This document shows positions 9,755 through 48,972 of a DNA stretch of 64,000 bases, piece after piece. Source of the DNA: Convolutriloba macropyga (Eukaryota); assembly GCF_964194025.1 (NCBI RefSeq), contig NC_134477.1:50344001-50408000 (forward strand), in the 5' to 3' direction. The notes below the pieces were generated by a model that saw only the letters and a list, made by a program, of their open reading frames with translations, was not told the origin of the DNA and made no database searches. The translations under genes were made by a program, and so were the position numbers. Every line of letters begins with the position of its first letter. The first letter of the stretch is position 1.

Positions 9755-11970
<2,216 letters not shown>

Positions 11971-19525: not shown

Positions 19526-22500
19526 ATGTCGCAAAGGAACAACGACGAGTGTCAGTTTGCAGTAAACATGTTTAAATCAACGGAAAGTTCTTTGAAAAGC
19601 CAGCTTGATTTGTTACAGAAGGCAATAGACGATAGAAAGAGCTTCCGATCATTAAATCTAGTGATAAGCAGAGACAAAACGCTGCAAACAGAATTGGACA
19701 AGAAGACAGAAGCAGTGTTGAGGGCGAAGCCTCACCAGAGTACAGCAACTTCGATTCTCGACAGACAGAAAGCCTTAACATCCAGACTGCAGCAATACGA
19801 ACTGGAAGTTGACACATTGGACGATGATGGTCTGTTAAGCCAGTCCTCAACAAGATTTCGCGAAGACGTCACAATTCCCTCTCGCCCAAGCAGCCGACGT
19901 CTGGATTCAGAACGATCAACACCAACACGCAATGTTATCACTGAAGAAAGATTTGTCGAGCAAGCAGCCAGTTCACAACCGAACGACACAACAGTCATCC
20001 TTAATCCACCGCCCATTCCTCCAAGACCAGTCAAGCCATCACTATTCCTGGACAACCAGCAAATCCAGGATCCTCTTATTAGCCATTTGATAAATCAACA
20101 ACAAAATTTCCATCAACAGAACAGAAACCAGTTTGTTGACTCCAACTCAACACATCATGCTAGTCATTATCATCCAACGGCATCAAACACCCTAGAACAA
20201 CCCAATGCTAATCATCAGCAAGAAACCTTAATTTTGCCGCCTCTCAACATGTCAAACTTGGATCATCAGTTGAACCAAGAACCCAATTTCCTAACGGCAA
20301 AGGATTTAGAATTCAGCGGTTCTCAATCCAAACAAAAGCAGTTTGTTAACCGTTTCAGTTTATCTTTGACCCCTGAAAGTCAGAGAGGCTTCCGAAGCGT
20401 CAACGTACCTTGTCCAACCCTTCAAGATGAAGGCGGAAACCCATTCCTTGGCAAAGCAATTATTGACAAGCCTCTTAATCATGGACCTGAATACGTGACA
20501 ATAGATCATAACCCTCACTCATCTAAACAAAACTACGTTCAGCCTATGCATTATTGTTTCACAAACAATCTACAACCAACAACAGCTGCAAACGTAGTTT
20601 CGGATGTCCAGAGCTATTGTTTTTCAAAAGAACAAGATGTTCAACTCAAACCTCAAAAGCCTGAAAACAGTTTTGTGCAACGTGTCAGTTCTTTCAACAT
20701 CGGTCCCAATGATCCTGTAAAAAACACAACCTTGACAAACAGCTTCCCAATTCAGGGTTTAGCAGTTCAAAGGCCTCCTGTTTACCCATCTACTACCCCA
20801 GCGCAAGCAAACATCCAGTCAGTGCAGAGCGATCTACAACTTCTTACAACGCATTCCACAACCTCTCAAGAAGCGAACAAACCAGTCCATAGCTTCAATC
20901 CGGCTACTCAAACCAGTATGGTGGACATTGGTCAGAACAACGCAAACGCTTATTTATCATATCCTTTACCCATCAAGAACATGGCAGCTGAACCCGCTGT
21001 AAATCAAAGTCATTCAAACGACGAAATTTCGCAGTTGCGGCCTCCCCCTCTACCTAATCTTTATCCAACTAACACCTTGCCAACTTCAAGCGTAAGGCAA
21101 CATCAGGCTCCAGTGTTTGCTACAGCTGGACAATTTGTCCCCTCAATGACCAATAGTGAACTTCAGCCAACATCTGTCGACCTAAAATGCTCGATCAAAT
21201 TGCCGCCATTAAAACTGCAAAATTTTAATGGTAACCCCATGCACTATCACGAGTGGATAAATAATTTTTTCTCAATGGTTCACAATAACATTTCAATTAC
21301 TGACACTCACAGAATAACCTACCTACAGAATTCAGTGTCGGGTAAGGCAAAGGATCTGATACATGCTTACTCTTGTGATCCATCCTATTATAATACAGCC
21401 CTCAACGAGATAATGAGCCGCTTTGGCGACCCTTCAGTTGTTGTCAACGCTTTTATCAACCAATTAGAGAGCTGGAAATGTAACAGTTCTTACAACAAGC
21501 AATCCTTCATAGCATTCTCTTCATTTCTAAAGAGACTTGTCCAGGCTTTTCAGAACCTAGGTTTTCAAGCCGACCTTCAATCGTCTACATTAATGAGGAA
21601 AGCGAAGGAAAAAATTCCCCACAACTTGCTTCTTAAATGGTCTGAATACACCCTGACAGAGAATGTTACAACAACTACCCTTGTTGAGTTTCAAAAATGG
21701 CTTGATGTTCAAGCAAGGGTTTATGACAAAGTAAACCAGGAAAATAGAACCAGTACCTTCACTCACAACAAAAACGGTAATTATCCTGCTGTGACAGCAC
21801 AACAATCGGTTCAAGAACAGTTTAAGCAAACAACTGCAAAACAGTCTCAAAGGAACGATTTAGATCAAGGAAAGGTTAATCACAACGGCTCGAAAAATGA
21901 GCAACAGTTTGCAAACAAGCACACAAATTGTGTTCAATGTCACAAACCGCATTTTGTTGCAACTTGTTCAGACTACCATAAATTGTCCCCTGAAGGTCGA
22001 TTTCAAACTATCCAGAAAAATAGCTTGTGTACAAACTGTTTAAGTAATCAACATCGCAGAGACACTTGTCCCTCCTCGAAGCGTTGTCAAGTGTGTAATG
22101 GTTTTCACCATACAACACTACATAATCCAGCTAAACAATTCAGCAGAACACATGCCGCTTTTACTACCAGCAACGTTCAACAGCAAACTAAAACCTCAGG
22201 TCAACAAAATTGGTCATCGAAAGACGACAACAACTCACAAACGCAAAAAAGTATTGAAGCAACTCAGAATAAAATAACACAATTCAAACCCAAAAGCAAT
22301 CTCAGGTATGGAAAAAATTTTGGAAATAATAATAATCAACAGTTATCGAAACGTGCGAATTTGAATGGACCTTCTACCAGCCAAAATTTCAATGTCAACA
22401 AATTATCCAGTACACCGAAATATTGGTTTGAGCAGTTACAGCTGCTGCCAGTATCCTTTATCAAAGAAGATAAAGTATTCGACACGTATGCTCTCATTGA

Positions 22501-24022
22501 CCCCGGCAGTCAGTTTACGCTTTTATTAGATGCTGTCTCTGACTACCTGGAACTCCCACGCGAATATCAATCTTCAACTACTGTTCAATATCTAAGCGTT
22601 GATTACGAAACGCCCCTATCAAAAATAAAGCAACCAATAACAGTTTGCCCTTTCAATCAGTTTGATGAAAAGTTCCAAATATCCAGAGCCTACAGCACCC
22701 CTACATTAAACGTTAATGCAGCCAATGTCACTGAGCTAAACTATGTTTGCGATGCATTCAATGAACTTCGACACATATATTTCCCAGACATTGCCGAAGG
22801 TAAGATTGGAGCACTCCTTGGTGTCAATGCTTTTGCCTTTACGCATCCTACTGAAGTAATTCAAGGCACCGAAATCCGCCCCTTCGGAGTAAAGACAAAG
22901 CTTGGATGGACACTTGCAGGAGAGTACCTGAACACACTAGGAAACCGCTCTTCAAAATCTTCTAATAAATCGAAAGTATTTGTATACCATGTCTGTCGGA
23001 AAAGTCCAGAACAACCCTTGGACAATTTGATACAAGAATTTTGGTCAATAGAGAACGATGGTACCAGAAAACAAGATAATACTATCACTGAAGATGAAAA
23101 GTCTGCCATTCGAATACTTGAGAGTACTATCAACCACACAGGGGAAAGGTATGAAATAGGTCTTCCATGGAAAGTACCTGCCAATCTTCAAAATAACTAT
23201 TTTTCTGCCCTCAATCAGCTAAACAGTTTGAACAAACGACTTAAAAATGATCCAAAACTAAGTGATATGTACCAACAGACTCTTGTCACAGATCTCGAGA
23301 AAAGTTACGTCAAGCCAGTGGAAATGACAGACCCACCCCCTGAGAAAATATGGTACTTGCCGCATCACCCTGTTCAAAGCGCAAACAAACCAAACAAAGT
23401 GCGTCGTGTCGCCAATGCAGCGTCAAAATTCAAAGGCGAGTCACTAAATTCCAATCTTCTAACAGGACCAGACCTCTTAAACAGTCTAATAGGAATTTTG
23501 GTCAGATTTCGTGAAAAACCTATTGCTATTTTGGCAGACATTGAAGGAATGTTCATGCAAATCGGCATCCGAAATGAAGATCAATCTGCGCTACGTTTCC
23601 TATGGTCTATTGACAACGATGTGCGACAGTTTCAATTCACCAGATTGATTTTCGGTGCAACTTGCTCACCATCTTGTGCAATTTTTGTCTTAAACAGATG
23701 CGCAGAGGACAACGTCGAGACATATCCAAAAGCACAGAGCGCTATAAAGTCTTATTTTTATATGGATGATTACATCCAGTCCTTCGACTCTCCTGAAAAT
23801 GCCAACGCGACTGCATTTGAAGTAAAGAACTGCCTGCGAGCCGGTGGTTTCCGCCTCACAAAATTCCTGTCAAATCATCAACAGGCTCTTCAGTGTATTA
23901 CTCCAGAAGACCTCGAGGAGCCCAAGAGTGAAACAAGAGTCCTCGGACAAAAATGGAACCTTGAAAAAGATACATTTTTCATGAAATCCCTAGGAGAACT
24001 CCCTAAAGAAGCTGAACAATAA
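19526..24022 (+). CDS. Bel/Pao gag-protease-RT polyprotein (1498 aa, ends at a premature TAA)
   Basis: DUF1759-like gag (LPPLKLQNFNG), three Zn knuckles (CVQCHKPHFVATC, CTNCLSNQHRRDTC, CQVCNGFHHTTLH), protease ALIDPGS, RT WYLPHHPV...YMDD. Confidence 0.9.
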   Translation: MSQRNNDECQFAVNMFKSTESSLKSQLDLLQKAIDDRKSFRSLNLVISRDKTLQTELDKKTEAVLRAKPHQSTATSILDRQKALTSRLQQYELEVDTLDDDGLLSQSSTRFREDVTIPSRPSSRRLDSERSTPTRNVITEERFVEQAASSQPNDTTVILNPPPIPPRPVKPSLFLDNQQIQDPLISHLINQQQNFHQQNRNQFVDSNSTHHASHYHPTASNTLEQPNANHQQETLILPPLNMSNLDHQLNQEPNFLTAKDLEFSGSQSKQKQFVNRFSLSLTPESQRGFRSVNVPCPTLQDEGGNPFLGKAIIDKPLNHGPEYVTIDHNPHSSKQNYVQPMHYCFTNNLQPTTAANVVSDVQSYCFSKEQDVQLKPQKPENSFVQRVSSFNIGPNDPVKNTTLTNSFPIQGLAVQRPPVYPSTTPAQANIQSVQSDLQLLTTHSTTSQEANKPVHSFNPATQTSMVDIGQNNANAYLSYPLPIKNMAAEPAVNQSHSNDEISQLRPPPLPNLYPTNTLPTSSVRQHQAPVFATAGQFVPSMTNSELQPTSVDLKCSIKLPPLKLQNFNGNPMHYHEWINNFFSMVHNNISITDTHRITYLQNSVSGKAKDLIHAYSCDPSYYNTALNEIMSRFGDPSVVVNAFINQLESWKCNSSYNKQSFIAFSSFLKRLVQAFQNLGFQADLQSSTLMRKAKEKIPHNLLLKWSEYTLTENVTTTTLVEFQKWLDVQARVYDKVNQENRTSTFTHNKNGNYPAVTAQQSVQEQFKQTTAKQSQRNDLDQGKVNHNGSKNEQQFANKHTNCVQCHKPHFVATCSDYHKLSPEGRFQTIQKNSLCTNCLSNQHRRDTCPSSKRCQVCNGFHHTTLHNPAKQFSRTHAAFTTSNVQQQTKTSGQQNWSSKDDNNSQTQKSIEATQNKITQFKPKSNLRYGKNFGNNNNQQLSKRANLNGPSTSQNFNVNKLSSTPKYWFEQLQLLPVSFIKEDKVFDTYALIDPGSQFTLLLDAVSDYLELPREYQSSTTVQYLSVDYETPLSKIKQPITVCPFNQFDEKFQISRAYSTPTLNVNAANVTELNYVCDAFNELRHIYFPDIAEGKIGALLGVNAFAFTHPTEVIQGTEIRPFGVKTKLGWTLAGEYLNTLGNRSSKSSNKSKVFVYHVCRKSPEQPLDNLIQEFWSIENDGTRKQDNTITEDEKSAIRILESTINHTGERYEIGLPWKVPANLQNNYFSALNQLNSLNKRLKNDPKLSDMYQQTLVTDLEKSYVKPVEMTDPPPEKIWYLPHHPVQSANKPNKVRRVANAASKFKGESLNSNLLTGPDLLNSLIGILVRFREKPIAILADIEGMFMQIGIRNEDQSALRFLWSIDNDVRQFQFTRLIFGATCSPSCAIFVLNRCAEDNVETYPKAQSAIKSYFYMDDYIQSFDSPENANATAFEVKNCLRAGGFRLTKFLSNHQQALQCITPEDLEEPKSETRVLGQKWNLEKDTFFMKSLGELPKEAEQ

Positions 24023-25425
24023 ACTCAACGGAAACTTTTCAGTCTGGTGTCATCGATTTTTGACCCAATTGGGTTTCTTGGCCCAATGACAATAAAGTTC
24101 AAAATTCTTCTTCAGCAGCTTTGGAAGTTAGGTAGAAAATGGGACGAGCCACTCCCAATTGAACTTCTACATCCCTTACAAAAGCTCCTTAACAGTTATC
24201 ACTCTATGCCTCAACTTGAAATTCCACGACAGATGACAACACAGAATCTACTGGAGACAGAGAACCAGTTGCATGTTTTTGTTGATGCATCGATTGTTGC
24301 AACGTGTGCTGTTGTCTACCTCAGGAGCTTGAATAAGACCAGCAACGAAGTACAAACTGCATTCGTGATCGGGAAATGCAAAGTAGCGCCCGTAAAACAG
24401 TTGAGCGTTCCAAAGTTGGAACTAGAGGCATCTGTCACAGGTGTTCGACTCCTGAATTTTGTTAGACATGAACTCTCTGTTGAAATCAGCAATGTTTTTT
24501 ATTGGACGGATAGTCAAGTTGTCCTTGACTGGATTGGTTCTTCCAAGAAGCAACCAGTTTTTGTTGCTAATCGCATTGCAGAAATAAAATTAAAAAGCAA
24601 ACCTGACAATTGGAATCATATTGCGACAAACTTAAACCCAGCTGATCATGGTACTCGTGGATTAGAACCCAAGGAAATTGAAGCAAAATGGTTTAAGCTA
24701 CCAGATTTTCTCTCCACAACTGATGTCTTTTGTAGATCTACAAAGCAAATGCCAATTTGTGCTGCAACAACACGATCCGCCTTAAGAACCAAGAAACCAG
24801 TACTCGACCCTAAACAGTTTTCAACATGGACAAAGATTTTGCTAACGATAGCTACTGTTTTCAATCTGATCTACAGAGCGAAAAAACACGGCTGATCCAG
24901 AGTGTCAAGCGGACGCTCCTGATCATTCTAGGGTCAAGAAAGTTTACTTTTGACGTTTTCCACACAATCATGGTTGAAGCAGAAGCTATGATGAACTCCA
25001 GACCACTTACAAACGTGTCGGACGCCATGAAAAACGAAGAACCATTGACGCCAAACCATTTTCTAATTCAGCGTCCTTTCAACTCTCTTCCCCCTGGTAT
25101 CTTCCCGTCAACCAAGCCAGCTAACATGAAGTCTTGGAAGAATGTTCAACAATTCCTCAACCACATCTGGAGGAGACTGGTCCGGGAATACCTACCGACC
25201 TTGATAAAGCGACCAAAATGGACCGAAAACGCCGGGACTTCACTCAAAGTCAACGATGTGGTGTGGATCCTGAAACACTTCACCCCACGTGGTATTTGGC
25301 CTCTGGGAAGAGTAGAAGAAGTGTTTCCTGGACGAGATGGTAACAACAGAGTAGTTAAAGTGAAAACGGCTTACGGCACCTTCGTCCGCCCCGTGTCCGG
25401 TCTCGCCCGTGTTTTCGCTGATTAG
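24023..25425 (+). pseudogene. Remainder of Bel pol: RNase H and internally deleted integrase
   Basis: In frame after the TAA: TQRKLFSLVSSIFDP, LHVFVDAS, LELEA, WTDSQ, NPADHGTRG. At ~24888 it jumps to RLIQSVKR...NSRPL...WPLGRV (integrase C-terminus); the HHCC and first two catalytic Asp regions are absent. Confidence 0.88.
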
Positions 25426-25756: not shown

Positions 25757-28695
25757 GGACATTAAATAAATTTAGATTACGCAGAAATCAAGAGAGGTCA
25801 GGTCTGACAAAACCAACTGAAAAGCTAAAACGCTCTAGCCAAAATTGTACACAATAATTGAAACGTCCTTCAACAATAATGGTTGCAAACTTTGTTCAAG
25901 AGCAACAAGTAACCAAAAACACAAACGAACTGGCAGAAAATGATCTTTTTACGAACCTATCTGACACGCTGAAATTTGTTTTCTTTTTCTCGAACTTCAA
26001 ATTTGTCAACCCGCAGTTGTCTAGAACATTTGAAAATTTTCAAACTATCAAAATAGTCAAAGAAAACTAATTCCAATGGAAACGCCCCCCACTGCTCCGC
26101 AGAGACATTAAGGAAAAATTATGAAAAGACGTCATCTAGAAATACCTTACATAATGTTCAACTTGAAGAAAAAAGAATACAAAAGATCAATAGCAAAAAA
26201 AAACATTTAAAAATTGACAACTTGTTTAAGTTGAACGATTCCAGCAAAATGAATTCAGTTCAACAAACCCAAAACTACTATCTAGAATGAAGTTCAGAAA
26301 GCTCAAATTATTCAGGAAGCAGACTAAGACTTATTGAAAAGCAACAATAATTGACAAATACCATTAAATAAATTAAGTACAACGTTAAGTTTCTTTATCC
26401 TAATGAAACCAAAACCCTTAAAATGTAATTAAAATTAAATGATTGCTTTTTAAGTGGAAAAACAAACTAAACAAATACTTGAAAACTTTTTGTAGCAAAA
26501 GAGCAGCAGAAAGAAATTTTTTTCAAAAATCCGTCTCGTTTTCATTTAAACTCTAAACGGAGAAGTTTATAACTGATACCATAAACAATAGTAGGCATAT
26601 TTTTTAGGCGTATTTAAAACTTTATACACAAAAAGCTAAGCAAAAGTTCAATTGTCAGTAATTGGATAGATCAATCAATTTGCTTGTATTGTATCAATTG
26701 CCACACAAATGTAATCAGCTGGGTTTATATTAATTCAACGTCACTATCGTCAGTTACGAAGCTTCAAAATTTTCTGACTTACAGGCTTTCAAGCCCTTGC
26801 AGATGCAAAGAAAAATTCTCTCAAAAAAGCAGAAGCAGTTAAGGATCAAATGATAATTCAATAGGAAAATTTTATGTCGCAATAAATTTTAAGAAGAATT
26901 TATCTTAAATTTCACTTCCAGAGACAGATCTTCAAGTTGATATTACACACACCTTGGACTATGTTGCTCACAAAAAGTTCAATATCCTTTTTAAAACTGT
27001 TTACAAATAGCGTAAATTAGAAATATGAAAACGTTTCGAAAATAAGTACTGCAGTGACTTCAAATGATAAAATTAAAAATTGAAATTTGCATGATTACTT
27101 GTTAAGAACATTTAAAATGGAGCCAAAGGAAAAACATTACTGACAAAGCGGACAAATTTCTCTCAATCGACAGGTTACGCTTAGTTCGCATCAACAAGTG
27201 GGTTGCACAAGTCAAATTAAATTGAAATTATTAGAGTTCATTATAGACCTTATGAAAAATGTGAATTGCCGAAACGAAACCAATGTCGCGCAGCACTATT
27301 CATTTGACTTGTATTAGTAAACTGCTGCCTATTTATTGCACCTCCTAAAATGTGAATGAGAGGGAAATTAAGATCACGCAAAAATCAGTATTAACTCATT
27401 CGAAAAGACAAAACGTTCAAATCAAATATTTGCAAAGATAAAGAAGTCATAAATTTCGTTTGGGAGAAACTAAAAATAGTTCGGATGAATAATGGCTTCA
27501 CATGCGATGCGCAATCGCATGTTTCACCTTTTTCGAACGTTCCCTTTTTCCAATTTAATTCGACAGACGAAAAAAGCCGGTAGAATACAGAAATAGCTGC
27601 AAAATACAGCTAAGTGCCATACTAAATAGATAACAACAGGTTCTGCATTAAATGATGGAGCACTTACCACTCGACTATCAGACCCTTATGACCTCTATCA
27701 TGACCTCTTATGACCAGCTAACAATCGCTTTTGGATTAGCAAAGCAGACTTAATTTTTCAATCAGAGCAATGTAGGTCAAGCAATCAAGCGTGAAAGTGA
27801 CTCCAGAAATGAAATTAAAAAATGTTCTAGAAAGCAGTCAAGCAAAAATTCTGCATACAAAAGGCTCGGCTATCAGGGCCTTGTCATCTACTCTCTAACA
27901 AACGGTTTTCTCTAACAAACATCTACTCTCTACAACAAACTAGTTTGGAGAAAGAGTAATTGAAACCACTCAAAAAATCAAGAGTGAAAAAGTCACTTGA
28001 GAGGTCAAAGATTATTCAAGAAAAGCGCATAACGGTCAATCAAACAATTTGTATAAAAATACACACACGTTTACAATAATTACTTCTCATTCGAGTGCAA
28101 TTAAAAAAAAGATCACCGCAATATAACTATGTTCAGCTTAAAGGTACATTAACTAAACAAGTAGGAACAATAAAAATACCCCTGGACGAAATAAATATAT
28201 TGAGGTAAAATGATGAATTTGACTACTCTCAGTTTGATTTCTGATATTTTTCAAATGTTCGCTTCAATCTCATGGCACATACTATAGATTGTGAACTTCA
28301 CCAGGAGAAAAACATTGAAAAAATCAAGACCTGCAAAGACAACGCCGGTTTTCAAAGTTCTAGTTTAAAATTTTGCTTCTTTTTCTAGGCGTACTTAAAA
28401 ATTTATACACAACAGAAAGTTGTGCAGAAGTTTACACGTTAGAAATTGGGTGCGATAGATCAATCAATTTGCCTGTATTGTTTCAATTGCTATACAAGGC
28501 AGACAAAACTCGGTTTCAGCTCGGTTTCTATTAATTAAACAGTTCCGAAGCTTTAAAATTTTGAACTTAAAGGCTTTCAAGCCCTTGCAGATAACCAGCA
28601 AAGTTCTCTCAAAAAAGCAGAAGCATTCAAGAATCAAATGATAACTCGATAGGTAACAGAGTTTCTTTCAAATAACAAATTTTCATCATATCACA

Positions 28696-29663
28696 TCAGA
28701 AATCTTTAATTCTTCTGTGTCTTGGCTTCGGTCTGTCAATCTGGACTTGCTTGTATGTCATTTCTATTAGAGTTTGCCAGTATTCCATTGTCTTCGGATC
28801 CAACTCTTCCAGTTTCGGGGGTCCATTTTTCCTGGTAGGGGTGCTAGAGAAGTGTTTCAGATTCACTAAATTTGTTCAGTTCGTTATTGAACTAAAATCC
28901 TGTTCTATGTAGACTAAATATGGGTCTGGGCCAATCATAAAGCTGGCAGTTAAAAATTAACTGATCAGGACGACAAAAAATCCAGTGCCTACAAATCGCG
29001 GACCAGATGCCTGGTTAACCAGACATTTTTAGAGACCAGTGTTATAAGTTAGTACCAGATTTTCTACGCATCGAGTTATTAACGCGAGATGGTGCCTTTA
29101 GAACTGAAATTATTAATAACGGGTTCGGCGATTTAAAATTGTAAACGACAGCAAATTATATCACGGAAAATAAGGGAAAAAGACAATCGAAAAGTCAAAT
29201 AGGTCAGGCAAAAAGTTTTCTTAAAAAGACAGGGATCATTTCTGCTTGCCCCCCCCCCCACCCCTCCCAGCTTAGTGGGCTTATATCTTTAGCGCCACCC
29301 AGGCGCACGTGATTTTTTTTTTACATAGTAACGTGCTATATGACAACATATAATTTGTGACTGGAGGGCGTAAACCACTGTGAGCCAGCACAGAATAGAG
29401 AACTTAATGCCCTCTGGGCGATACATGTCTCCCGTTTTTGATGACAAAATGTTCTTGGGTCAGACGAAAAAAGGGTCAAGCGAAAAATCGCAAAGAACAC
29501 AGGACTAATATAATTACTACAAACTTTGTTTGAGAGCAATTAACCAGTATAACCACCTCATAATATAACCATTAACATCTCAAAACTGCTCTCAAACTAT
29601 CGGAGGGCGCTCAATTTCTATTGTAGCCTGCTTCACAGATAGATGTAGGGATGAGGAGGAAGA

Positions 29664-29694
<31 letters not shown>

Positions 29695-31848
29695 GAGGAG
29701 GAGGAGGAGGAGGAGGAGGAGGAGGAGGAGGAGGAGGAGGAGGAGGAGCTTGGAGTAGAGAGATAGGCTTAAGATTACCAAGGTTCGTAAGATGACTTAA
29801 TTAGAAGTTATAGGCCACTATTCAGATTTAAAGTGAAAAATTGAATCCAATTTTGGCACTGATTTGATTTAATCAGCTCTCGTTGCAATAGCAACAGTTG
29901 CATAACTTCCAGGCAAAATTAAACGTTAACGCCAAATTAACAAAAAATCGGCTTCGTCATTTGACTACGAGTTTATTACTACTCTTACCTTTTAAACTAC
30001 ATATAAAATTTGGGATCTTTTCAGTTTGTGCCCCCCATGTTTGGAAGAAAACAGCAATAAAATAAAAAGGCGGGGAACATTCTTCGAGCTAATTATTCCT
30101 GTTTTTAGATAACGTGTTGAAAAAATTTAAGTCCGGTAACAGCAGAATTTTGCAAAAATTGTCAACTGACCTAAAAATGGAACTGAAAACTCAAAAGAAA
30201 CTTTAATAGGTAAAATAATTCTAAGAAAATGAATAGAATTTCAGCTACCACAACATACGCATGAAGCTGAAAAAAGCCACATTTAAAAAAACACCGAGAC
30301 GGTTATCTTAGCGATTCATTCAGATTAATCATTTTTGAAAAAAAAAACAGATAAGTCCGCTACAAACAATAACATTTAAAAAATCGGATCTTGGTCGCCC
30401 ACAAATATGAGAAACTACACAAATTGAGTTTCAATTAGATTTAGAGTCACAAATCCATAAAGTGTGTGAAGAAGTTATTTCTTAGACTGAGGTAAGCTCA
30501 GCTTTGATTTAAAAACAGAAACCAACTAACTTCGGAAAAATTGCTCTCGAATGACAGGCAGCGCAATTAAATTCAGGGGCTGTAGCCTAGATAAATTTTT
30601 CTTTATGAGTGCAAAAACATCAGCCGAAGGTACAATTCGAACCCCGACATCTTGAGTCTGATTCCGTAACCTCGATGGATGGATTAACCAATCGGCTATC
30701 AGGGCCTTGTCATCTACTCTCCAACAGTCGGTTTTGTTTGATCAAAAAACTTTATTTCGGAGTGAGAGCAATTGGAACCACTCAAAAATCAAGAAGTGCG
30801 TGAAAAAGTTACTTGAGAAGTCAAAGATTATTCTAGAACAAAACGGTCAAGCGAAAAATCACATCTGGCCTGAAAACTCGAGCGAAAATAAATTTGGAAA
30901 ACATTTAAATAAAAAATCACTGCGTAATCAAGAAACGTCCAAATTCCACACAAAAGCTATTTCTTGCAATGAAGCGCTCTCTACGTCATAACACACTCTT
31001 GAACTTTCCGCTCAATAGTCGACACATTCTGAAAGTGCTTCCGCAAAAACCGTAAAACTTTACTCTTATTGTGCAATTACAATAGGTGAAAGCACCCCTT
31101 TTGAAAGCTGTTTTTTCAACAACTAGGTGAGACACTTCCCTTATTTGCCATAACCACTCAGGATATTCCGAATCATCCTGTAAAATGGGAGCGTCTTCTT
31201 TGTCTTTGTAGACTTGTGATCCAACACACATTTTGGTCAGTGTGCCTGGATCTTGAGGAAGGGTGATATTAGCACCAGTCGAAGTAGCTCCCCCTTTGGA
31301 ACCTAAAATTATTATAATTTATCTAGCAAGAGATTTACCATCGGATCTACAATCAGCCAGTTGTTTCCGACATCGGCTCCATAATATTCAAACATGAGGA
31401 AACGAGGTGATAAGTTGGTTCTTTCCATTTGAGCCCCCTTATGGTGATTACCAGCTGTACGTTACATGACCACTACTTACCTCCTGTGCCACCTATGACC
31501 ACCAAGATACCAACTACATGTGTATTGAATCTTTCTAGCTATTACCCCCCCCCCCCCCCCACCACCGTACGCTATCCGCATCCACTTATAGAACATGTGC
31601 CATTACATTGAACAATGTGTTAATATACAACGAGTTCCTAGGGATTCAGAAAATGTGCAGCAACTACGCCGTGGGTCACAAAATTACTGCTGATTAGGTA
31701 AAATTCTTGCTGATTAAAAGTGCGGTATAGATAGCCGTAACGTACCTATTCGAACAGCTCCTGGACGTGCTTTAGCAAAGAGAGGTCTGCACGTGCAGCT
31801 AAAACAACGCACAGCTGTCAAGGCAACAACAGCTGTAGTCATTGACAT
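28696..31848 (-). CDS. MRPL54: Mitochondrial large ribosomal subunit protein mL54 (137 aa)
   Basis: Exons 31848-31746 (transit-peptide-like MSMTTAVVALTAVRCFS...), 31302-31140 (CVGSQVYKDKEDAPILQDDSEYPEWLWQI) and 28843-28696 (GPPKLEELDPKTMEYW...*). EYPEWL and GPPK.LEELDP...EYW match mL54. The intron-2 donor appears non-canonical. Confidence 0.88.
29260..30040. mobile_element. Dispersed (GGA)n element, copy 2, with a HINE-A fragment (~29390-29541) inside
   Basis: Homologous to 3767-3794 plus 4908-5465. GGA tract at ~29650-29748. Lies in MRPL54 intron 2. Confidence 0.7.
30515..30865 (-). mobile_element. HINE-A-like element with a tRNA-derived (A/B box) segment
   Basis: The left end accaactaacttcgg..aattgctctc resembles the family-A terminus. 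The minus strand reads GGCCCTGATAGCCGATTGGTTAA...GGGGTTCGAAT. A partial second copy is at ~27865-28030. Confidence 0.5.
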
Positions 31849-32779
31849 CCCTCACATCTGAAAAGATTCAAAATATTACAGCTTCCTTATGGAAGAAGAC
31901 CTATTAGTTCTCCAATTTAGTATCAAAAATTTACTGACGAGAAAACCTGATCGGTGAAAAGCTGTATGGCAATATATGCAGAACGGGATGGTATATTATC
32001 ATTTGTGACATATTAGACAAACATCGAACGAAACGAATTAATCTTAACGATAAGCGGGGAAATCGATTGTAACTTATTTGAAGGGGCGGGAAAAGTATCA
32101 AATTGCTGTGTGCCTGTCGTATAAAATTCATGGCCCAAAACTACACATGCAAATTAAAATTGAGAGAAAAAACAGCAACTCGGAGTGGCCACGAAAACGG
32201 TGCATCACACCCAATATACCAAGCATCTCCCCGTTACGGCTTGCATTAGCAAGAGCCCAAAACCTCTGCTGAGAAATTATTAGCAACTGCTGAGAAAATT
32301 GATTTTATACTATATTATTACCTGTGCAATGTACAAAATTGATCAAATCAGTGCAGATCAAACGGCACACAACAAGCATATTTGAATTTAAAAGAGACAT
32401 TTAAAAATAATCAATATAACAGTGATTTCCAAAAATAACTAGGTCTTTCTTTAAACGCTTCTTTAAACGCTAATAACATTCTTTAAACGCTCTATGACGA
32501 AAACTAGAGGCGGTAGAGGGGTCAAACTTTCTATACATTCATAGTACTCCACCAACTGATGACCTGACACGTAATAATTCAATTTTGAAAATTTTCCTTA
32601 GTTTCTTCTTTTGACTAATATTTTAAATGATTTTGTTGCGAAGTACCTGCGAGATGAAAAAGTAAACATGGCATTATCATTTACGAAGTCCAGAAAATAA
32701 AGTCCATGCACTGCTTCTAATATTCATTTAAACCGCTTCCGTGCAATTTGTTTGTTTGTATTCAACCAGTTTTTTAAGC

Positions 32780-40527: not shown

Positions 40528-43500
40528 CTAATCAATACTTTCACTTTCTTCAAATTCAGCGCTTGTTTTCAACAATTCAAACCGTTCCTCAAAGTACTGC
40601 TTCAACATTTGCAAATGAGCTAATTTCTTTGTGAAGGTCAATTTGTGATTTTTTGACAATCCAACGCATACAACTTGCATGAAAGTCTGAATTCTTGGGT
40701 GCTTCGGGAAATCTTGAATAAACTTCTCCAGGAAAATGTGATCGTGGAATGGAACATTATCTTCTTCCTCATAACCCTGCTCGTTCTCTATCGGAAATTT
40801 CCACAGTTTTCCCTGAAGTGTTAATTTTATCATCTCTTCGAACCCATTTCGAGTTGGTGTTTCGAATAAAGACGTGGTATCTTTGTGTAGTAAAACGTTC
40901 CAAGCCGATTGCCCAAACTTTTCCATACTTTCATCAGCAGAAAGTCGAGAATCAGTTTTACTTTTCATGAAGTTCGCGTCAAAGATGTTCAATCGTTGTT
41001 GACCATATAAGGATATATTTCTGTCACTAAAATCATCTCTTGCTCTTCGACGTCCTGTGCGCCTTGATGACATTCTGTTTTTAATCCAGTCACTAAAAAC
41101 AGCCACTGAAAAAATAGTCAATCAAATTCAAAGTGATAATTTGATCCTTTAAATTATTCGACAACAAGCATGAACTAATCCTTCTCTAACTGTAGAACAC
41201 AAAAGATATACTTGTAGTGATCAAATAACTAAAAAAATGATTAAATTTTCCTTTCTTTAGATACAGAGTTTCAAAATTCTTTCATCCATAGCAACAACTT
41301 AACACGAGGGTTTAATAGAGGAAATGAAACCAAGGTAGCTACCGGGTCCAATTGTTAGAAAATATTTTTACTGCCATTTCTGAGTAAAGAGATGGACACA
41401 TACAAAAGGGACAAGATGTGGGGGAAGGGGTGATTGTGAGAATATCACAAACCCGTGTTCATCAGGCCTCCCTTCTTCATCGTAGCCGAAGTCACCAGAC
41501 ATTCCAGCAGTATAAGCATCAATTGTTTCATCACTGAAGAATTCCTCGTAGTCATCGTAACCCCTGTCAGATCTCGTCTCTGTTTCTTGTCTCTGTCTGG
41601 TCCAGCCCTCTGCAGAATACTTTGCGTCGAAACCTATAAGATAATTTAGCCAGTAAACTCAAGCAACTGAAAATGACAGCTACCTTCCTAGGATTAGAGA
41701 ACTAAGGTAAAAGAAAACCAGATGCAGAAAACATAAAACATAACCCACGAATGCCGGACAACTTGATCTCGTTCGACTGCCGTGTGCTCAATTCCATGGG
41801 GGGGGGGGGGTGAGACAATAGGTTTACTATAATGCTATTTTATCAAATAAGGTTATTAGGTGAGGAGCTTACAGGTGAGGAGCAAGATTCAAAGTATAAA
41901 GAAAATTTAGCGATCGCTCCTAATCTTTCCAATTGAATTTTAGAAGTAAACTACCGCCATGTGATAAGCTGCTTGTAATTGTGATTGAGAGAGCAGTTTA
42001 AATTACGCAGACAAAGACGTCAAGCGTGATACGAAAATGTCCCTCGAAAAATCAAAAAGGTCAAGAAAAAATTTTGCACAAAAGACAGACACGCTACTAC
42101 AATAATTGCCTCTAACATAATGCATCCCAAGTTAGCATTTAAGAATGGAGTTATTTGATATAAACTAAAGCCAAAAGCATGTTTTCCGAGATACGCTGCG
42201 TACACTTCTAAATTTTGCAAACATTTTTTCCGGCCCCAATTTAGGCAGCCTATCAAGTTGCACTCATTTTTATTTTAAACGGGAACTTGGAAAGAATAAT
42301 CTCGGCTCAAAATTTCTGATACATATCAGGAGAACAATAATTTCACTGCCCAAGTATCAGCGTCGATTCAATCAACAGCTTCTATATTCAACATCTGCGG
42401 ATAATCAAGGTCAAAGTTGCCCCGAAAAATCAACTGATAATTCTGGTGTCATCCTCACATTCTAGGCAGTGCAACGGATTCAAAAAAGCGTACAACGCGA
42501 CAGCTTGTGGCTCTTTTCTTCTCAGCCTCTTCTCATTGTCCTTGAAGTGTGTTTCGTAGGTTTTGATGAGCAATTTTTAGACAGCCTGGTTCTCGTCTGT
42601 TGCGGAGCTATCTGAGGAATCTATCATTGCAATGACTCTCTTTTGTGGTTTTGTTGTGAACACTGCGCTTGTTCCCAGAAGTGAAGACCAAACTGAAATT
42701 ATCTGGATTTTCATTTTTTCAGCATGCTTGTCGGCAAACTTAATGGCGTATGTGTATGCTGTTCGCTTACCAGAAATTTTTATCTTGCTTTCTGGTTCAT
42801 GAAAACACAATAGGGTTAACCGGGATGATTTATGTGAGAGGTTATCAAACATCTGGTTCTGGACACAAGTTTTTAGCGCTTTCATTTAGGCGGTTCTATT
42901 TTGTCGGTCCTTGGAATTGCGCCATCAGCGTAATACATTGTCATCTGTCCGAAAAATGGTTTCACTGCAACATGATCGTCATCTCGCTCTCGGAGAAATT
43001 AACCAGCTCACCGCCCAGCGTTGCCCGAAGTCACCGCCCAGCGTTGCCCGAAGTTCAAGAGTTGGTCAGCTGAGCTGTTTGATTGCTGCAACTTTTCACA
43101 ATTTCATTAAAAAACGAGTTGTGGTTGTTGTAGCTGTTGCATAGAGCTGCAATTCGCAGAATATTCTGGTGGGATAAAGGCGTTTATTGCCGTTTTTAAC
43201 TGGTACCCTAGTTGCATTTGTATAAGAAAGATAAATATAGTATTAGTGTGACTGCCTATCCACAACTCACTTGTGGTGCGGCGACCTTTCTGCTTCTATG
43301 CCATGGTGAAAGACATGCAGTCCCGGTTTTTTTTGGGGGGGGGGTCGTGTTGGACTGATGGTATTAAGTCAAGCCAGTTGGCTACCTCTATTGGTCTTTC
43401 CCCACAGGTCTAATACTTTCAGGTCTGTGGTGTTCTTACTGCAGTTGAAAATGTGGTTTACTTCATGCGGTGTTACTTGACATCTGGGACAGCGGTTATC

Positions 43501-46500
43501 AACATTGTTACAGATCCTACTCAGGTAAGAGTTTAGCAGTGGGCAGTATCCAGTTCTCAGTTGTGCTAATTGGATACGTGCAATTCGTGGCAGCGTGTGT
43601 TATTCTTCTGCAATCTTTGGTGAAAGCATACCTAGTTGCTTTCTGTCTTTGTACAATTGAGCATGGACTGTGTGTCGGTGGATACTTCTTGTATTATTTG
43701 CGATTCAATTGCTCTTTATTGTTTGTGTTGTTTCGGGCGATCACTATAAATATCATTCAGTATCGGTCTCATGGGACAAAAACTGGTTGAGGAGGTTCTT
43801 TTATGAACAGTACGATGGCTTTGACACCTGCCAGCTAGAAATTGCTCTACTAGCATTTCTGTGTGATCTTCAACAGGCAGCATTCTTCAACAGGCAGCAT
43901 CAACCTCATTGTGTAAGTCATTGATGTCTGATATTTTTGCATTTTTGCACAGCCATTATTTGTGCAAGAGCAAAGCTTTGTTGTGTTTGCAGGTGGTTCA
44001 AGTTCCTATTGCTGATTAAGGAAGCCCAAATGGGAGCACCATAGTTCATGACGCTCAAACCGATGGCTTTGTAGGTCATTGAGAGTGTCTTTTTAGCGCA
44101 TACACCACCTTGGGTGACACCCTGTTTAATTTTTCTCCACTTTGATTTCTAGTGTTACATTATAAAAAAACCGGCAATGTAAGTGTGAAGCGACACATCT
44201 TTGAGTGCTATTTGGTAGTGGTGCCTTCAGTATGTCTCTTACTTGTAGGTTGTGATCAACCGTGTAGAAAGCCGCGGTGAGGTCTAAAGCTACTAGTAGA
44301 GTACGCTTGCAGGGTTTCTTTTAATTCAGGCCTTTCTGTATATCGTTGGTGACAATATTGAGAGATGTTATGGAGTGCTCAGGTCTATAGACAAGCAAAT
44401 GTTATTTGAGTGAATATTCTATAAAGTCACTTAGTAAGAGTTTTTATGTTAGTTTTGCAATGGTGGACAGGAGTGAATTAGTCTGAAGCTTTCAGATTCG
44501 TCTATGGGTTCACCAGGTAAAACTCCTGTACAGGTATACCCCGGTCAACTTTGATGTTCGGGATTTTGCACTGTTTACAGAAAAGTTTATGGTGACAGTG
44601 AGGGATCTCAGTGCTATGGGGCATAGATGGTGTAGTGTAGGTGGGTTGGAGCCTTACTTTTTTTGTCTCATAGCTTCTTGCACTGTTAAACTTAAACATT
44701 TGCACTCTATTTTCAGTTTCCTTTTTGTTCTTAGTGTATTTGTTTTCTGTTTTTCGTTTCTCTTGGGCTGTGGAGTGTATTGTTGGCTAAACTTGTTGGC
44801 GCATTTAGTAGGATCATGGTGAGAAGTAGTCTTCTTAGCGTCAAAGTATATGGCTCTGTTTGCAGGTGGTTTATCGTTACTTGACGAAAGTCCTTTTACT
44901 GTGTTCCAGAGTTTAAAGCAGCTACTTCTGTGAGTAAGTGTTTGAACAAACTCGATCCATTTCTTGCGCTTTTCACTTTGAACAAATTTGTTTTTCATGG
45001 TTTAGTTGCGTGATTTTGGGGTTCCCAGGATCTTTTCGTTGCATTTCATCTCTCGTTTCAGAAATATGTACTGCTTCAATGGGAAAATTGGCAGCCATTG
45101 TTTTAATTCTTTCTTGTGGGATATGCCTGCCAGGCGCTGGATTGATGGCTTTCCTTAAGATTTTTTTGGCATGGTAGACATTTGTTGGCCTTTGTTGTTT
45201 CTTCAGTTTTAGTTCAATGTCGTCTGAAAAACTTGCCCAGTCAGCTTTGATGAAGTTGATGAAAGTTCTTTGTGGTGTTGTGTGTGATGATGTCACAGGT
45301 GAAGGATAGAACTATTGATAACTAATCCGATCCTAATGCGTACTCCGTGCGCCAATCGAAGCTCATTGCTATGCTTGAGCTGGCGAGACTGATGTCCGGG
45401 GAGCTTTTACAAGAATCAGTTACTCTTGTGCGGGCATTTTCGTTGAGTAACACATGATTGTAGAGGTTTATTTTACTTGCACCATTGTTTCCTCTGTCTT
45501 CCGTTAGTTTCCAGTGCCATAGTGGGCTTTGAGCATTGAAATCACTGACAATGCATTCATCTAACTCCAGTAGTTTACTGATTGATTTATTGTATCCTGC
45601 ATCACAGCTAGAGGATGGTGGTATGTAGGTGTTCACTAGTTTGATGTTATGACCAACTGCGGTGAATTCTATGGCTTGCACCTCTAGGTGCTTGTCGGAA
45701 GATCTAATTTCTTGAAACGGAATTCTGTCCCTAATAATAAAAGCTACTTCTCCACCCTTGCCACTTTCTTTGGACCTATTTTCTCGGACTGTGCAATAGC
45801 CAGGTTGGCTTTTTAATTCAGGTTGGTCTTCGGATGGCACCCATTTGGATGTTTATTTTCTGCATCCAGTCTATGATGCTGTCTAGTTTTTGTTTGAGAC
45901 TATAACAATTCAGTTGAAGAATGTTGAAGTGTGTGTTGTCGTGACTGGGGAAACTTTGCCTTGTATTTGCTTCTATTATCTCACACCAGGAGCAGCGCTT
46001 ACAGTCTAACTTGTTGTTCCATTGCTCTATGGACTGTAAGTTGGTGCGATTCAGGTGTAACCATCTTTCGCTGCCGTATTGATTCCAGTTGCAAAGGTGA
46101 CCAATAGCACAAGGCGTTGCGCCGGGGTTTGTTTCAATGCCGCCGAGGATTAGAAGAAGAAGCAGGGTAAATATGTGTTTCCCATAAAATGCAGGATAGG
46201 GACCAGAGAGACTGGGCTTGCCTGATCCCGCCGCAAAAACCAGTTTCTCGCAGTCTGTGTACAGTATGTATGGATCCTGGGAGCGGTTGCCCGCTCGTAG
46301 TTCTGCCGCGTAGAGGCTTCATACTTGAGAACCACGAGTTGTGGTTGTATGCTCTGCGCGTAGTCGTAGTCAGCATCGTGAACCTCAATTGGGTGCATTA
46401 TTTTGAGTTGATTATGCTCTTGGAGCGTTTCCAGTTCTCGGAGCGTTTTCTTTAGTGTTGGGATGTAGTTGACGTCCGAGACGGAGCCTTGAATTTTTGG

Positions 46501-47904
46501 ATTTGAGTTCTACAATTGTTCAACTTTTTCATGGGAGCAGTCTTAACTTTCCAAGATGTGTATGAGACCTATGGATTTTTCGCCAAGGGACACAACAAGA
46601 CGCCAGTGATACACAAATTACTCAGTTTTTTTTCAATGTTAGAACAATAATGATCTATTTTGAATCCCATCTTTACACACCCACCCCGAGCCAAAAAGGA
46701 TTATCATTATGCATCTCATTTTGTACCGGCGTAGAGGGTTTAAAAATCTTATTTCATGGAAAATGAATCAAAGGTTTATGGGATTTGATATGGTACCGCT
46801 TCATACCATCCTGAAATTCACACGTCATTTTTTAAATCAAAAACCTTTCTATTTCTCAAACTCACCCGGCAGAGGAAATTGACGAATCAAATCACTTAAA
46901 TTGTCTCCAGGTGATGAACTTTCATCTTCTTTCAACTCCACAGATTCTTGAAATTTTGATCCATATTTGCGCGCCGTTGTAGTCTCCTGTTTCTCATTTT
47001 CAATCAAATTTTTATTCTTCCTTCTCCTTTTCCTCTTTTTCGAAGGCGAGGGCGACCTTGCTCGACCCTCTTTTTCGACATCGTTTTCAGCCGTATTTTG
47101 AACTCTAGCATGGTGTTCCGCAATCGCCTCCATAAGACTAAAACTAGGCCCTCTCTTGTCAGATTCTACCTTATTCTCAGGAATCTTATTTCTGACAGGT
47201 GGCGTTTTTGGAGCTTTGAGAAATTCGGAAAAAGAATTCACAGTGTCAGCAGATTTTGAAGTTTGAAGCAAAGTTGAGTCAATAGTAGATGACAAACTCT
47301 CTCTTTTGCTCGTATCGGCTACAATTTTGGCCATCGGTTGTTCCACATCTTCTTCGACGCTTTCATAAGCGTTGCCATAACTTTCTTCCATATTCTGCTG
47401 GTTTAGTTCTTCCATAAACTCCTCATCAATCCCAAATTTGTTATCAGACAACTGATCTTTAGCCCCTAATGCAATCTCGCACATTTCAGCCAATTCGTTT
47501 TGAATTTGTTTCTTTTTCGTCCCTTTTACTTTTTCACTGAAGGCTTTAGATGCGTTGATTGCTTCTTTGCGGGCTTGTAATTTTGTATGACTCACAAATT
47601 GTTCGTTTCCAGTCGATTTCTGGTCGCGTTTTTGCTCTGCAGGGTTTTGTATTACTTCGTCTAAAGGTGTTCGTTTCAATTTAATATTGGCCAGAATATT
47701 TTTCAAGCGTTCGTCACGCGACTGGGTAGATAAGTCGTCATTTTTAACTGTATCCTTTTCAATTTCAATGCTGTCATCGTTAAGTTGTTCCCTTAATTTT
47801 GATGAATTAGCACAATACCGACAGAATGGTACAAAGAGATGAAATCTACTGGCTGAAAATCTGTTCAAGAGAGATGAAACTGCTTTTGAGTACTGATAGT
47901 TCAT
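40528..47904 (-). CDS. MRPS31: Mitochondrial small ribosomal subunit protein mS31 (~594 aa)
   Basis: Exons 47904-46866, 41633-41453 and 41092-40528 with phase-matched GT-AG introns (phase 1, then phase 2). C-terminal NGFEEMIKLTLQGKLWKFPIENEQG, FHDHIFLEK, FMQVVCVGLSKN are the mS31 signature. The N-terminus resembles a transit peptide. Confidence 0.85.
43210..46500 (-). mobile_element. Degenerate APE-type LINE (2A-like motif, Cys/His remnant, APE, RT with core deleted, C-terminal CCHC) in MRPS31 intron 1
   Basis: FNILQLNCYSL, DFNA, SSPDISL and GSD (APE); LVALDLTAAFYTVDH and KQGVTQGGV (RT); LAQLRTGYC...CPRC...H...HIFNC...DLW (C-terminus). Many stops and frameshifts; boundaries are approximate. 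Confidence 0.88.
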
Positions 47905-48972
47905 TGTATCTAAAATGTATATGGGTAAATAAACACAGGCTTTATAAGACCGCACAATAACGATACGTTTACAACTCCAGCTGACATTTTTGAAAACAGG
48001 TTCGTACAAGCAGGATCTGTTTTTTCACGCTGAATTTTGAGGGATGACAAGTCATCATATGGATCCTTAAGACTTTCACGTTTTGTCTAAACGTCGTAGA
48101 GATAAAGAGCAACATCATTTGGCTAGCGAACTTTAGGCTCCTACTTTTGATTTAAATCGAAATATTTCAGTTGCACTTTCAAAAAGGGAAAAATATGAAA
48201 GATAGAGCTTGGATTGGGGGAATGTACTTTTTCTTTAAACATTAAGCTATTCTGCGAAAATGATCAAATTATTAGCTGGCTGAATCTGTTCTATTACATC
48301 TCCCCTAGCAAAACGCATCGCACGATGAACACTTGTATAGCTTATATCACCACTAATCGTGGTGATAAGGGTAAAATTCGACACTTTCTTCAAGTTATCT
48401 GTCTGTTCCAAAAAGTACATCTAGCAACAGAAGTTAGTAACTTAGCCGGCAAATTACCAAAGACTCTACTGTTGACTCCATTGACATTTACCGCGATTGA
48501 AACAGATTGAAACAGAAAAGAAGTATTTCCAAATTAGGAAACCTTATTTCATGAAACGCATTTAGTACTGATAATTTTTAAATACGGAAAAGGTTTTGGT
48601 GAAAAAAGACTAAAGAACAGAACAACTTATATCAAAATTAAGCGACCGTTCCAGACGACACAGAAACAGTCCAAAATGGATTAAAACTTCCTCTCGAAAT
48701 ACTACAAAACCACAAAAAAATTTAAGCTAAAGATAAAAAAAGCATATGCATCAATAATTTACACTTGCTCCACTAGAATGAAACATTAGCTACCTCAGAA
48801 GGTATTTTTATGTTCAGCAGAACACTGAACCTGTAATATTGATTCAGAACTTTGCACAAAAAGTTAGAAAGTAAATATTTTTGGCTAGCATTCTTTAACC
48901 AGCTGGTTATAAAAACTAACTTCCGTTTTCAAAAAAAGAAAATTGGCAGAAAATTCATCTCACTTTTGGAAA

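Follow-up and report, generated by a model that had tools for sequence, protein, structure and literature searches.

A probable spliceosomal GG-AG intron in the single-copy mL54 gene of the acoel Convolutriloba macropyga

The dinucleotide GT at the start of an intron is among the most conserved signals in eukaryotic genes. Here we describe an intron that begins with GG in the gene of the large ribosomal subunit protein mL54 (MRPL54) of the acoel Convolutriloba macropyga. The gene is situated on the minus strand of a stretch of 64,000 nucleotides (nt) of the genome (G000:C10:50344001-50408000; contig NC_134477.1), which is termed the window in the following and whose positions serve as coordinates. 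The genome searched comprises 1.176 Gb. The gene consists of three exons, which are given below together with the two introns and the splice sites of the second.

31746..31848, minus strand: mL54 exon 1, coding part, with the ATG at 31848-31846 (RefSeq proteins P0001 and P0002 mapped exactly)
31303..31745, minus strand: intron 1, 443 nt, GT-AG, phase 1 (exact protein mapping)
31140..31302, minus strand: mL54 exon 2, ending in ...EYPEWLWQI plus AG (match to PF08561 and exact protein mapping)
31134..31139, minus strand: non-canonical donor GGAAGT after exonic AAG (genomic contigs of sequencing runs X1 and X2 identical here)
28832..31139, minus strand: intron 2, 2308 nt, GG..AG, phase 2, in its major form, that of isoform X2 (joint in sequencing run X5 and mapping of P0001)
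28844..28845, minus strand: AG of the upstream alternative acceptor, that of isoform X1, with exon 3 starting at 28843 (P0002 mapped with GG..AG)
28832..28833, minus strand: AG of the major acceptor, that of isoform X2, with exon 3 starting at 28831 (joint in run X5 and orthologue sequence IRKNGPP)
28696..28831, minus strand: exon 3, coding part, with the stop codon at 28698-28696 (exact protein mapping)

Exon 2 alone matches the Pfam family PF08561, the mL54 family, with E = 2.4e-07. Membership in this family fits the wider comparison, in which 171 mL54 homologues were found at E <= 0.001 and orthologues align over their full length; the Convolutriloba protein and mL54 of Symsagittifera roscoffensis share 66% identity across 100% of the length. 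Two RefSeq proteins represent the gene. XP_075256202.1 (P0001, 133 residues, "large ribosomal subunit protein mL54-like isoform X2") agrees in 100% of its residues with the translation of exons 1 and 2 joined to exon 3 from 28831, and XP_075256200.1 (P0002, isoform X1, 137 residues) maps exactly with a GG..AG intron and the acceptor at 28843. The GG junction is already present in these public models, and both isoforms share the GG donor at 31140. The 3' untranslated region extends to 28612 at least, which is the end of a contig of run X5. The genome search found a single mL54 locus only, with no second locus and no processed copy (retrocopy).

On the minus strand, exon 2 ends in ...TGG CAA ATA AG|GGAAGTGTCT, the last exon base being the G at 31140. 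The first intron base (+1) is the G at 31139, and the second (+2) is the G at 31138, which is C on the plus strand. The donor AAG|GgAAGT matches the 5' end of U1 at 8 of 9 positions, and +2 is the sole mismatch. The acceptors of intron 2 are TCTCTAG|C (28843), which leads to a protein of 137 residues, and TACCAG|G (28831), which leads to one of 133 residues; both demand a phase-2 donor. The AG follows a pyrimidine-rich tract in both acceptor contexts, ACACTTCTCTAG and CCCCTACCAG, and the donor side shows the exonic AG and an A at +3. The neighbouring GT (GAA|GTGTCT) is in phase 0, and read-through past the GG donor gives 52 unrelated residues and then a stop. An original prediction, made from the letters alone, had described the AG|GGAAGT donor as a phase-2 site, both acceptors as requiring phase 2 and the adjacent GT as phase 0, and all of this holds on the sequence. 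The protein of 137 residues that it proposed equals isoform X1 of RefSeq, but the conserved and RNA-supported form is the 133-residue isoform X2, which uses the acceptor at 28831. Read support for isoform X1, the form with the acceptor at 28843, was not seen in the runs examined.

Four sequencing runs, none of which is recorded as RNA, were compared as assembled contigs over 28500-32000. Runs X1 and X2, two samples of one study, each provide a genomic contig of 643 nt over 30814-31456 with 0 differences. No alternative letter at 31138 is listed in these contigs, and the joined, intron-less form is absent from both runs. Run X5 belongs to a separate study of 2016. It covers exon 3 at a depth of 343-413 and exon 2 at 106-183, but the unique parts of the intron, where unspliced contigs have a depth of 7-10, at only 0-10. 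One X5 contig of 301 nt, with a depth of 412 or about 60 times that of the intron contigs, omits 2308 bases and joins exon 2 to exon 3. The joint was placed at 28830/31139, but three letters could belong to either of the joined sequences, which gives four placements, reading GA..GG, GG..AG, GG..CA and AG..CC on the gene strand. GT-AG occurs in none of them; only the GG..AG placement has an AG acceptor, and it equals the junction 31140^28831 of isoform X2.

Run X5 is read as complementary DNA (cDNA), and its joint as spliced messenger RNA, because of the difference in depth between exons and intron and because the locus is single-copy without a retrocopy. A low-depth X5 contig at 28816-29149, with three differences, crosses the acceptor unspliced, and the X5 genotype therefore carries the intron too. 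A transcriptome of C. macropyga was reportedly published in 2016, which would fit this run. The junction 31140^28831, one of two alternatives named in the original prediction, is thereby borne out by a deeply covered, cDNA-like contig from an independent run. The genomic contigs show neither GT nor GC at the donor, and no other GT donor and no extra exon were seen. We also note that run X6, which is labelled as a different organism, contains low-depth contigs of 151 nt identical to the window at 28963-29219 and 31871-32000; either X6 comes from the same species and is labelled differently, or material was carried over between samples.

Comparison with orthologues identifies the reading frame that the joint restores. 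The mL54 of S. roscoffensis (P0003) reads ...AYPEWLWTIRKNGPPILEELD..., and its stretch WLWTIRKNGPP is coded without an intron. The joined sequence of isoform X2, ...EYPEWLWQIRKNGPPKLEELD... (WLWQIRKNGPP), is equal to it in length and register, and a further acoel-like protein, P0004, reads ...WLWSLRKEGPP... at the joint region. Intron 2 of C. macropyga interrupts the R codon, AG|G, at the joint. The 31140^28831 join is taken as the functional one because it restores the protein that relatives encode intron-free. The genomic donor is GG, 31140 is connected to 28831 in the mature RNA, and this join yields the conserved protein. Use of the GG donor by MRPL54, as anticipated earlier, is upheld by the X5 joint, by both RefSeq isoforms and by the restored orthologue protein. 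The intron is cut out exactly in the cDNA-like contig, and the splicing machinery of C. macropyga therefore tolerates a non-GT start.

The exon structures were mapped for nine orthologues, with the following results.

S. roscoffensis (P0003): one GT-AG intron, at another position (GAQ|VYK)
Acoel-like contig P0005, 65% identical: no introns; MRPS31 90 bp upstream
P0004: no introns
P0014 (Logan contig): no introns
P0007, P0010 and P0015: the sole intron is the phase-1 one matching C. macropyga intron 1
Vertebrate P0017: a match to intron 1 and, 15 nt upstream of the C. macropyga site, a phase-2 intron that interrupts the W codon of EYPEW
P0024: a match to intron 1 and a phase-1 intron that follows the C. 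macropyga site at a distance of two codons (5 nt downstream)

The phase-1 position of intron 1, after an AK(K)xI motif, recurs in P0007, P0010, P0015, P0017 and P0024, and judging from these alignments it is ancient. An intron at the position of the GG-AG intron 2 occurs in 0 of the nine orthologues sampled. It is lacking in S. roscoffensis, in two other acoel-like sequences and in five other animals. In this sample the position of intron 2 is specific to the C. macropyga lineage, which fits a recent gain. Sliding of the intron from the vertebrate position 15 nt upstream was rejected as unlikely, since the five codons between the two positions, LWQIR, have a homologous coding counterpart in S. 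roscoffensis, whose gene is intronless there. We also note that three lineages have introns no more than 20 nt apart in the EYPEWLWxxR region (L037, L079 and window 31140) at three different positions, namely in the W codon (phase 2) in the vertebrate, in the R codon (phase 2) in C. macropyga and two codons further on (phase 1) in P0024. The region seems to be a hot spot where introns are gained or change position.

The two ends of intron 2 are complementary to each other over the segments given below. Neither this end pairing nor the lineage-specific position of the intron formed part of the original prediction.

31128..31141, minus strand: 5' arm of the stem, from exon position -2 to intron position +12, including the donor (duplex of -16.8 kcal/mol)
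28846..28859, minus strand: 3' arm of the stem, TGAAACACTTCTCT, immediately followed by the first AG (duplex and fold)

The exonic AG together with the intron sequence GGAAGTGT pairs with ACACTTCTCT, whose end is one base before the first AG. The stem consists of 10 base pairs (bp), including one G-U pair, followed by a mismatch and then 3 bp. When a pre-messenger RNA segment of 2371 nt was folded, the stem was found in the minimum-free-energy structure, with pair probabilities of 0.44-0.62. In the three GT-AG introns of the window, the anchored helix measures 4 bp and the energy ranges from -8.8 to -12.9. Among the pseudo-acceptors, defined as pyrimidine-rich AG sites in the window, 3-4% pair equally well by energy, and an anchored helix of at least 10 bp is formed by 2% of the pseudo-acceptors and by 0.3% of shuffles. 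The 3' arm resembles the 5' end of U1 because both are complementary to the donor, and this resemblance is given no weight.

A second GG-AG intron was found among the alpha-tubulin paralogues. With a 97%-identical alpha-tubulin as guide, ten introns were resolved in these paralogues genome-wide, nine of which are GT-AG and one GG-AG. The latter (G000:C3:20483936-20484452; L052:986-1502, minus strand) is 517 nt long and reads ttgcag|GGATCTGTTTCC...GGAAACAAAATCCCATTGTAG. Its end pairing of -19.8 is the strongest of the ten (the others range from -5.1 to -12.9) and is formed by helices of 5 and 7 bp (GGGAT/ATCCC and TGTTTCC/GGAAACA). Both ends of this intron are single copy, and high-copy repeat sequence is confined to an internal piece of 130 nt. 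With mL54 added to the tubulin sample, 2 of the 12 introns resolved are GG-AG and 10 are GT-AG; both GG-AG introns take the top two ranks for end pairing (chance 1/66). The two GG donors have only AG|GGA in common. The original prediction saw in the mL54 donor a hint of relaxed 5' splice-site recognition in this lineage, and the second GG-AG intron among the ten tubulin introns agrees with it, but in part and for that small sample only. We also note that the window itself contains an alpha-tubulin gene with GT-AG introns (9758-11533, minus strand), and that at least six intronless full-length alpha-tubulin copies are present elsewhere in the genome.

The spliceosomal small nuclear RNAs (snRNAs) were searched for changes that would accommodate a G at +2. 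The best U1 genes start with ATACTTACCTG; the eight best are canonical or changed only at positions 1, 3 and 4. A compensating U1 variant, with C opposite the +2 G, was rejected, as 18 of 18 U1 5'-region matches have A at position 7, opposite intron +2. An altered U6 was likewise rejected, all four U6 genes (4/4) carrying the canonical ACAGAGA box. U1 and U6 being canonical, the tolerance of the +2 G is not explained by snRNA sequence. We also note that four high-scoring U1 genes, L011-L014 (G000:C15:12297861-12298022, C7:54719635-54719795, C15:12374585-12374746 and C15:12406686-12406847), start with TTGATTACCTG rather than ATACTTACCTG and have an identical upstream flank. Their changes (positions 1, 3 and 4) would pair with intron +5/+6, not +2, and the four genes may represent a variant U1 class or a repeated pseudogene unit.

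The interior of intron 2 is occupied in large part by repeats.

29202..30956, no strand given: high-copy repeats nested in intron 2, at 29202-29552 and 30489-30956 (contig depths and joints)

The summed contig depth in the nested repeats is 10^4 to 10^5, versus about 60 at the intron ends. Joints between 29543 and about 30520 occur in many contigs; one repeat has therefore been split by a further insertion of about 976 nt, within which a (CCT)n run is found. At the intron ends (28832-29200 and 30957-31139) the depth is that of a single copy (about 60), and a genome-wide search (1.18 Gb) for copies of them gave self-matches only. As the ends are unique, the original intron would have been about 550 nt of unique sequence, into which the repeats were inserted later. 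Transposon copies at the intron ends, of the type of introners or miniature inverted-repeat transposable elements, were rejected on these self-matches, and the tubulin GG-AG intron gave the same result. The ends carry the 10+3 bp inverted repeat, and a 3-nt AGG is present at both junctions; AGG is also the plain protosplice consensus. A short interspersed element derived from transfer RNA was not detected inside the intron by ARAGORN. We also note that poly-G runs and a motif like GGGGCACAAAC.GAAAAGATCCC are common to the nested repeats of the mL54 intron (29250-29330 and 30030-30050) and to the tubulin GG-AG intron; the same abundant repeat family seems to have inserted in both.

These observations make it probable that intron 2 is a genuine spliceosomal GG-AG intron of 2308 nt in a single-copy nuclear mL54 gene, that it is removed in the U2-type manner with the aid of the stem, and that it belongs to a recurring class. 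In the mechanism we propose, the major (U2-type) spliceosome would remove the GG-AG intron, and the 8/9 match of the donor to U1 could offset the mismatch at +2. The 10+3 bp stem, which reaches from the donor region to the sequence just before the first AG, may hold the two splice sites together. The mL54 intron would then be a member of a class of non-GT introns with paired ends that recurs in the genome.

Several points weigh against this reading. The cDNA nature of X5 is deduced from depth and copy number and not from the run record, and the 3-nt ambiguity in the placement of its joint applies. The unspliced donor is uncovered in X5, and hence the +2 base is known from the assembly lineage only. 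Runs X1 and X2 probably come from the assembly project, and they are not independent of the assembly because the same project probably made it. As a chance event the stem is only moderately improbable (P about 0.02), in part since donors rich in purines are prone to pairing with pyrimidine tracts. The stem furthermore covers the U1 binding site and would therefore compete with U1 instead of helping. Finally, the tubulin donor CAG|GGATCT is a poor match to U1 beyond +3, and strong U1 pairing is therefore no general rule.

The GG could be an assembly error or a polymorphism, the expressed allele having a GT (or GC) donor, and the independent run X5, which has the spliced form only and leaves the unspliced donor uncovered, would accommodate such an allele. 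The agreement of the X1 and X2 contigs over 30814-31456, with 0 differences and no alternative letter at 31138, speaks against it, as do the RefSeq models, which use the GG site, and the occurrence of a second GG-AG intron elsewhere in the genome; we consider an error or polymorphism very unlikely. It is harder still to believe that the joined form is not a splicing product and arose by a template switch of reverse transcriptase across the hairpin or from a DNA retrocopy. The AGG direct repeat at both junctions and a stable stem that draws the ends close to each other do provide the geometry that favours a template-switch artefact, but in run X5 the joined contig exceeds the unspliced ones in depth by a factor of about 60, and a retrocopy is at odds with the one mL54 locus. 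Against both origins, the conserved C-terminal half needs exactly this join, and the orthologue sequence is matched residue for residue.

An intron of the U12 type, excised by the minor spliceosome, has scarcely any more to recommend it than such an artefact. Rare U12 subtypes with neither GT nor AT ends include GG-AG in surveys (PMC2831892), but the donor GGAAGTGT (GGAAGT) is without the U12 consensus [AG]TATCCTT, and a branch site resembling TCCTTAAC is absent from the 40 nt next to the acceptor, the last 45 nt being AACAAATTTAGTGAATCTGAAACACTTCTCTAG... A search for U12 snRNA (RF00007) was empty, though this search is insensitive, with 44 of about 111,000 candidates scored and the controls silent. 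Excision could also be driven mainly by the end-to-end stem and not by recognition of the donor by U1, which would make +2 irrelevant; the structure-defined nonconventional introns of euglenids and the hairpin-ended introns of Fritillaria and Amoebophrya may be compared. The strong pairing of the two GG-AG introns (-16.8 and -19.8 versus -5 to -13 for the ten GT introns, with the chance of 1/66), the coverage of the U1 site by the stem and the poor U1 match of the tubulin GG donor all fit such a process. However, both introns retain the AG|G donor and the normal AG, preceded by a pyrimidine tract, that spliceosomal introns have, very few introns were sampled, and P for the mL54 stem is only about 0.02. 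Excision driven mainly by the stem thus appears improbable, and a U2-type GG-AG intron in mL54 is the reading we prefer.

To our knowledge, very few animal lineages splice GG or GA donors routinely. GA-AG and GG-AG introns are described for the copepod Eurytemora affinis and the tunicate Oikopleura dioica (Robertson 2017, PMC5714493; Frey and Pucker 2020, PMC7072748). The intron of C. macropyga is similar to those in having G at +1, a purine at +2 and A at +3, with AG at the end of the preceding exon and an acceptor that is a normal AG, and in belonging to an ordinary housekeeping gene of an animal. In contrast to them, it is found in the lineage Acoela and its ends pair, a feature unmentioned in the portion of PMC7072748 at hand. 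A U1 variant was proposed for E. affinis, whereas no compensating U1 variant was found in C. macropyga. The sole mismatch to U1 at +2 with consensus elsewhere (in mL54 AAG|GgAAGT, 8/9) is also a feature of GC-AG introns, although most eukaryotes use G at +2 far less often than C, and the tubulin GG donor lacks the compensating consensus.

In Fritillaria borealis, about 95% of the introns escape GT/AG; their 3' ends are also non-canonical and are handled by duplicated U2AF, and RNA modification or protein factors are proposed for the non-canonical splicing (Soo et al. 2026, PMC13326754). The resemblance to C. macropyga is that of an animal genome that routinely splices non-GT introns with conserved core snRNA sequences. 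In contrast to Fritillaria, C. macropyga has a normal AG acceptor, 10 of its 12 sampled introns are GT-AG, and the ends of its mL54 GG-AG intron are single copy. Fritillaria introns, in earlier work, were reportedly gained recently and often have hairpin-forming ends. Introners, which are introns derived from transposons, are reviewed in PMC11282704, and the invasive intronic elements of Amoebophrya are described in PMC7789003. The mL54 intron is similar to these elements in its lineage-specific position, its inverted-repeat-like termini and the short AGG direct repeat at its junctions. It differs from them in that the ends of the mL54 and tubulin introns lack the many near-identical copies by which such elements are defined, only internal nested segments being repeated. 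Papers on non-GT donors or introners in acoels were not found in the literature searched, and the genome note (PMC13650328) is without annotation or splice analysis.

Other features of the window concern the surroundings of mL54. MRPS31 is located upstream of mL54 on the same, minus strand, at 40531-48009. In the acoel-like contig L034:208-1899, neither MRPS31 nor mL54 has an intron, and just 90 bp separate them; the arrangement of the two genes is therefore conserved, and in C. macropyga introns and repeats have enlarged it greatly. The MRPS31 exon junction (48.0-40.5 kb) falls in an unconserved stretch. A fragment of an endonuclease/reverse transcriptase of the long interspersed nuclear element type is present at 45325-45840 (minus strand), probably within the large MRPS31 intron. 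A BEL/Pao-type long terminal repeat retrotransposon is found at 19526-25425 (plus strand), with an open frame of 1498 residues (DUF1759, reverse transcriptase) and, after it, a frame for a Pao peptidase A17.

In this acoel, an essential housekeeping gene present as a single copy relies on a GG donor, and evidence from spliced RNA accompanies this observation. The negative result on transposon copies for the ends of the two GG-AG introns is a further addition. With this intron, Acoela becomes a further lineage for the study of tolerance at +2, and the donor-acceptor stem provides a specific, testable hypothesis. Gene prediction that is restricted to GT/GC-AG introns will break genes like mL54 in acoel genomes. 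More tentatively, and as a possibility that we do not favour, acoels of the Convolutriloba lineage may possess recently gained introns in which a donor-acceptor stem defines the splice sites, so that +2 need not obey the GT rule even with canonical U1 and U6; such introns would have arisen independently of those in tunicates and copepods. If the sites are indeed defined by the stem, this would constitute structure-guided pairing of splice sites in a bilaterian animal.

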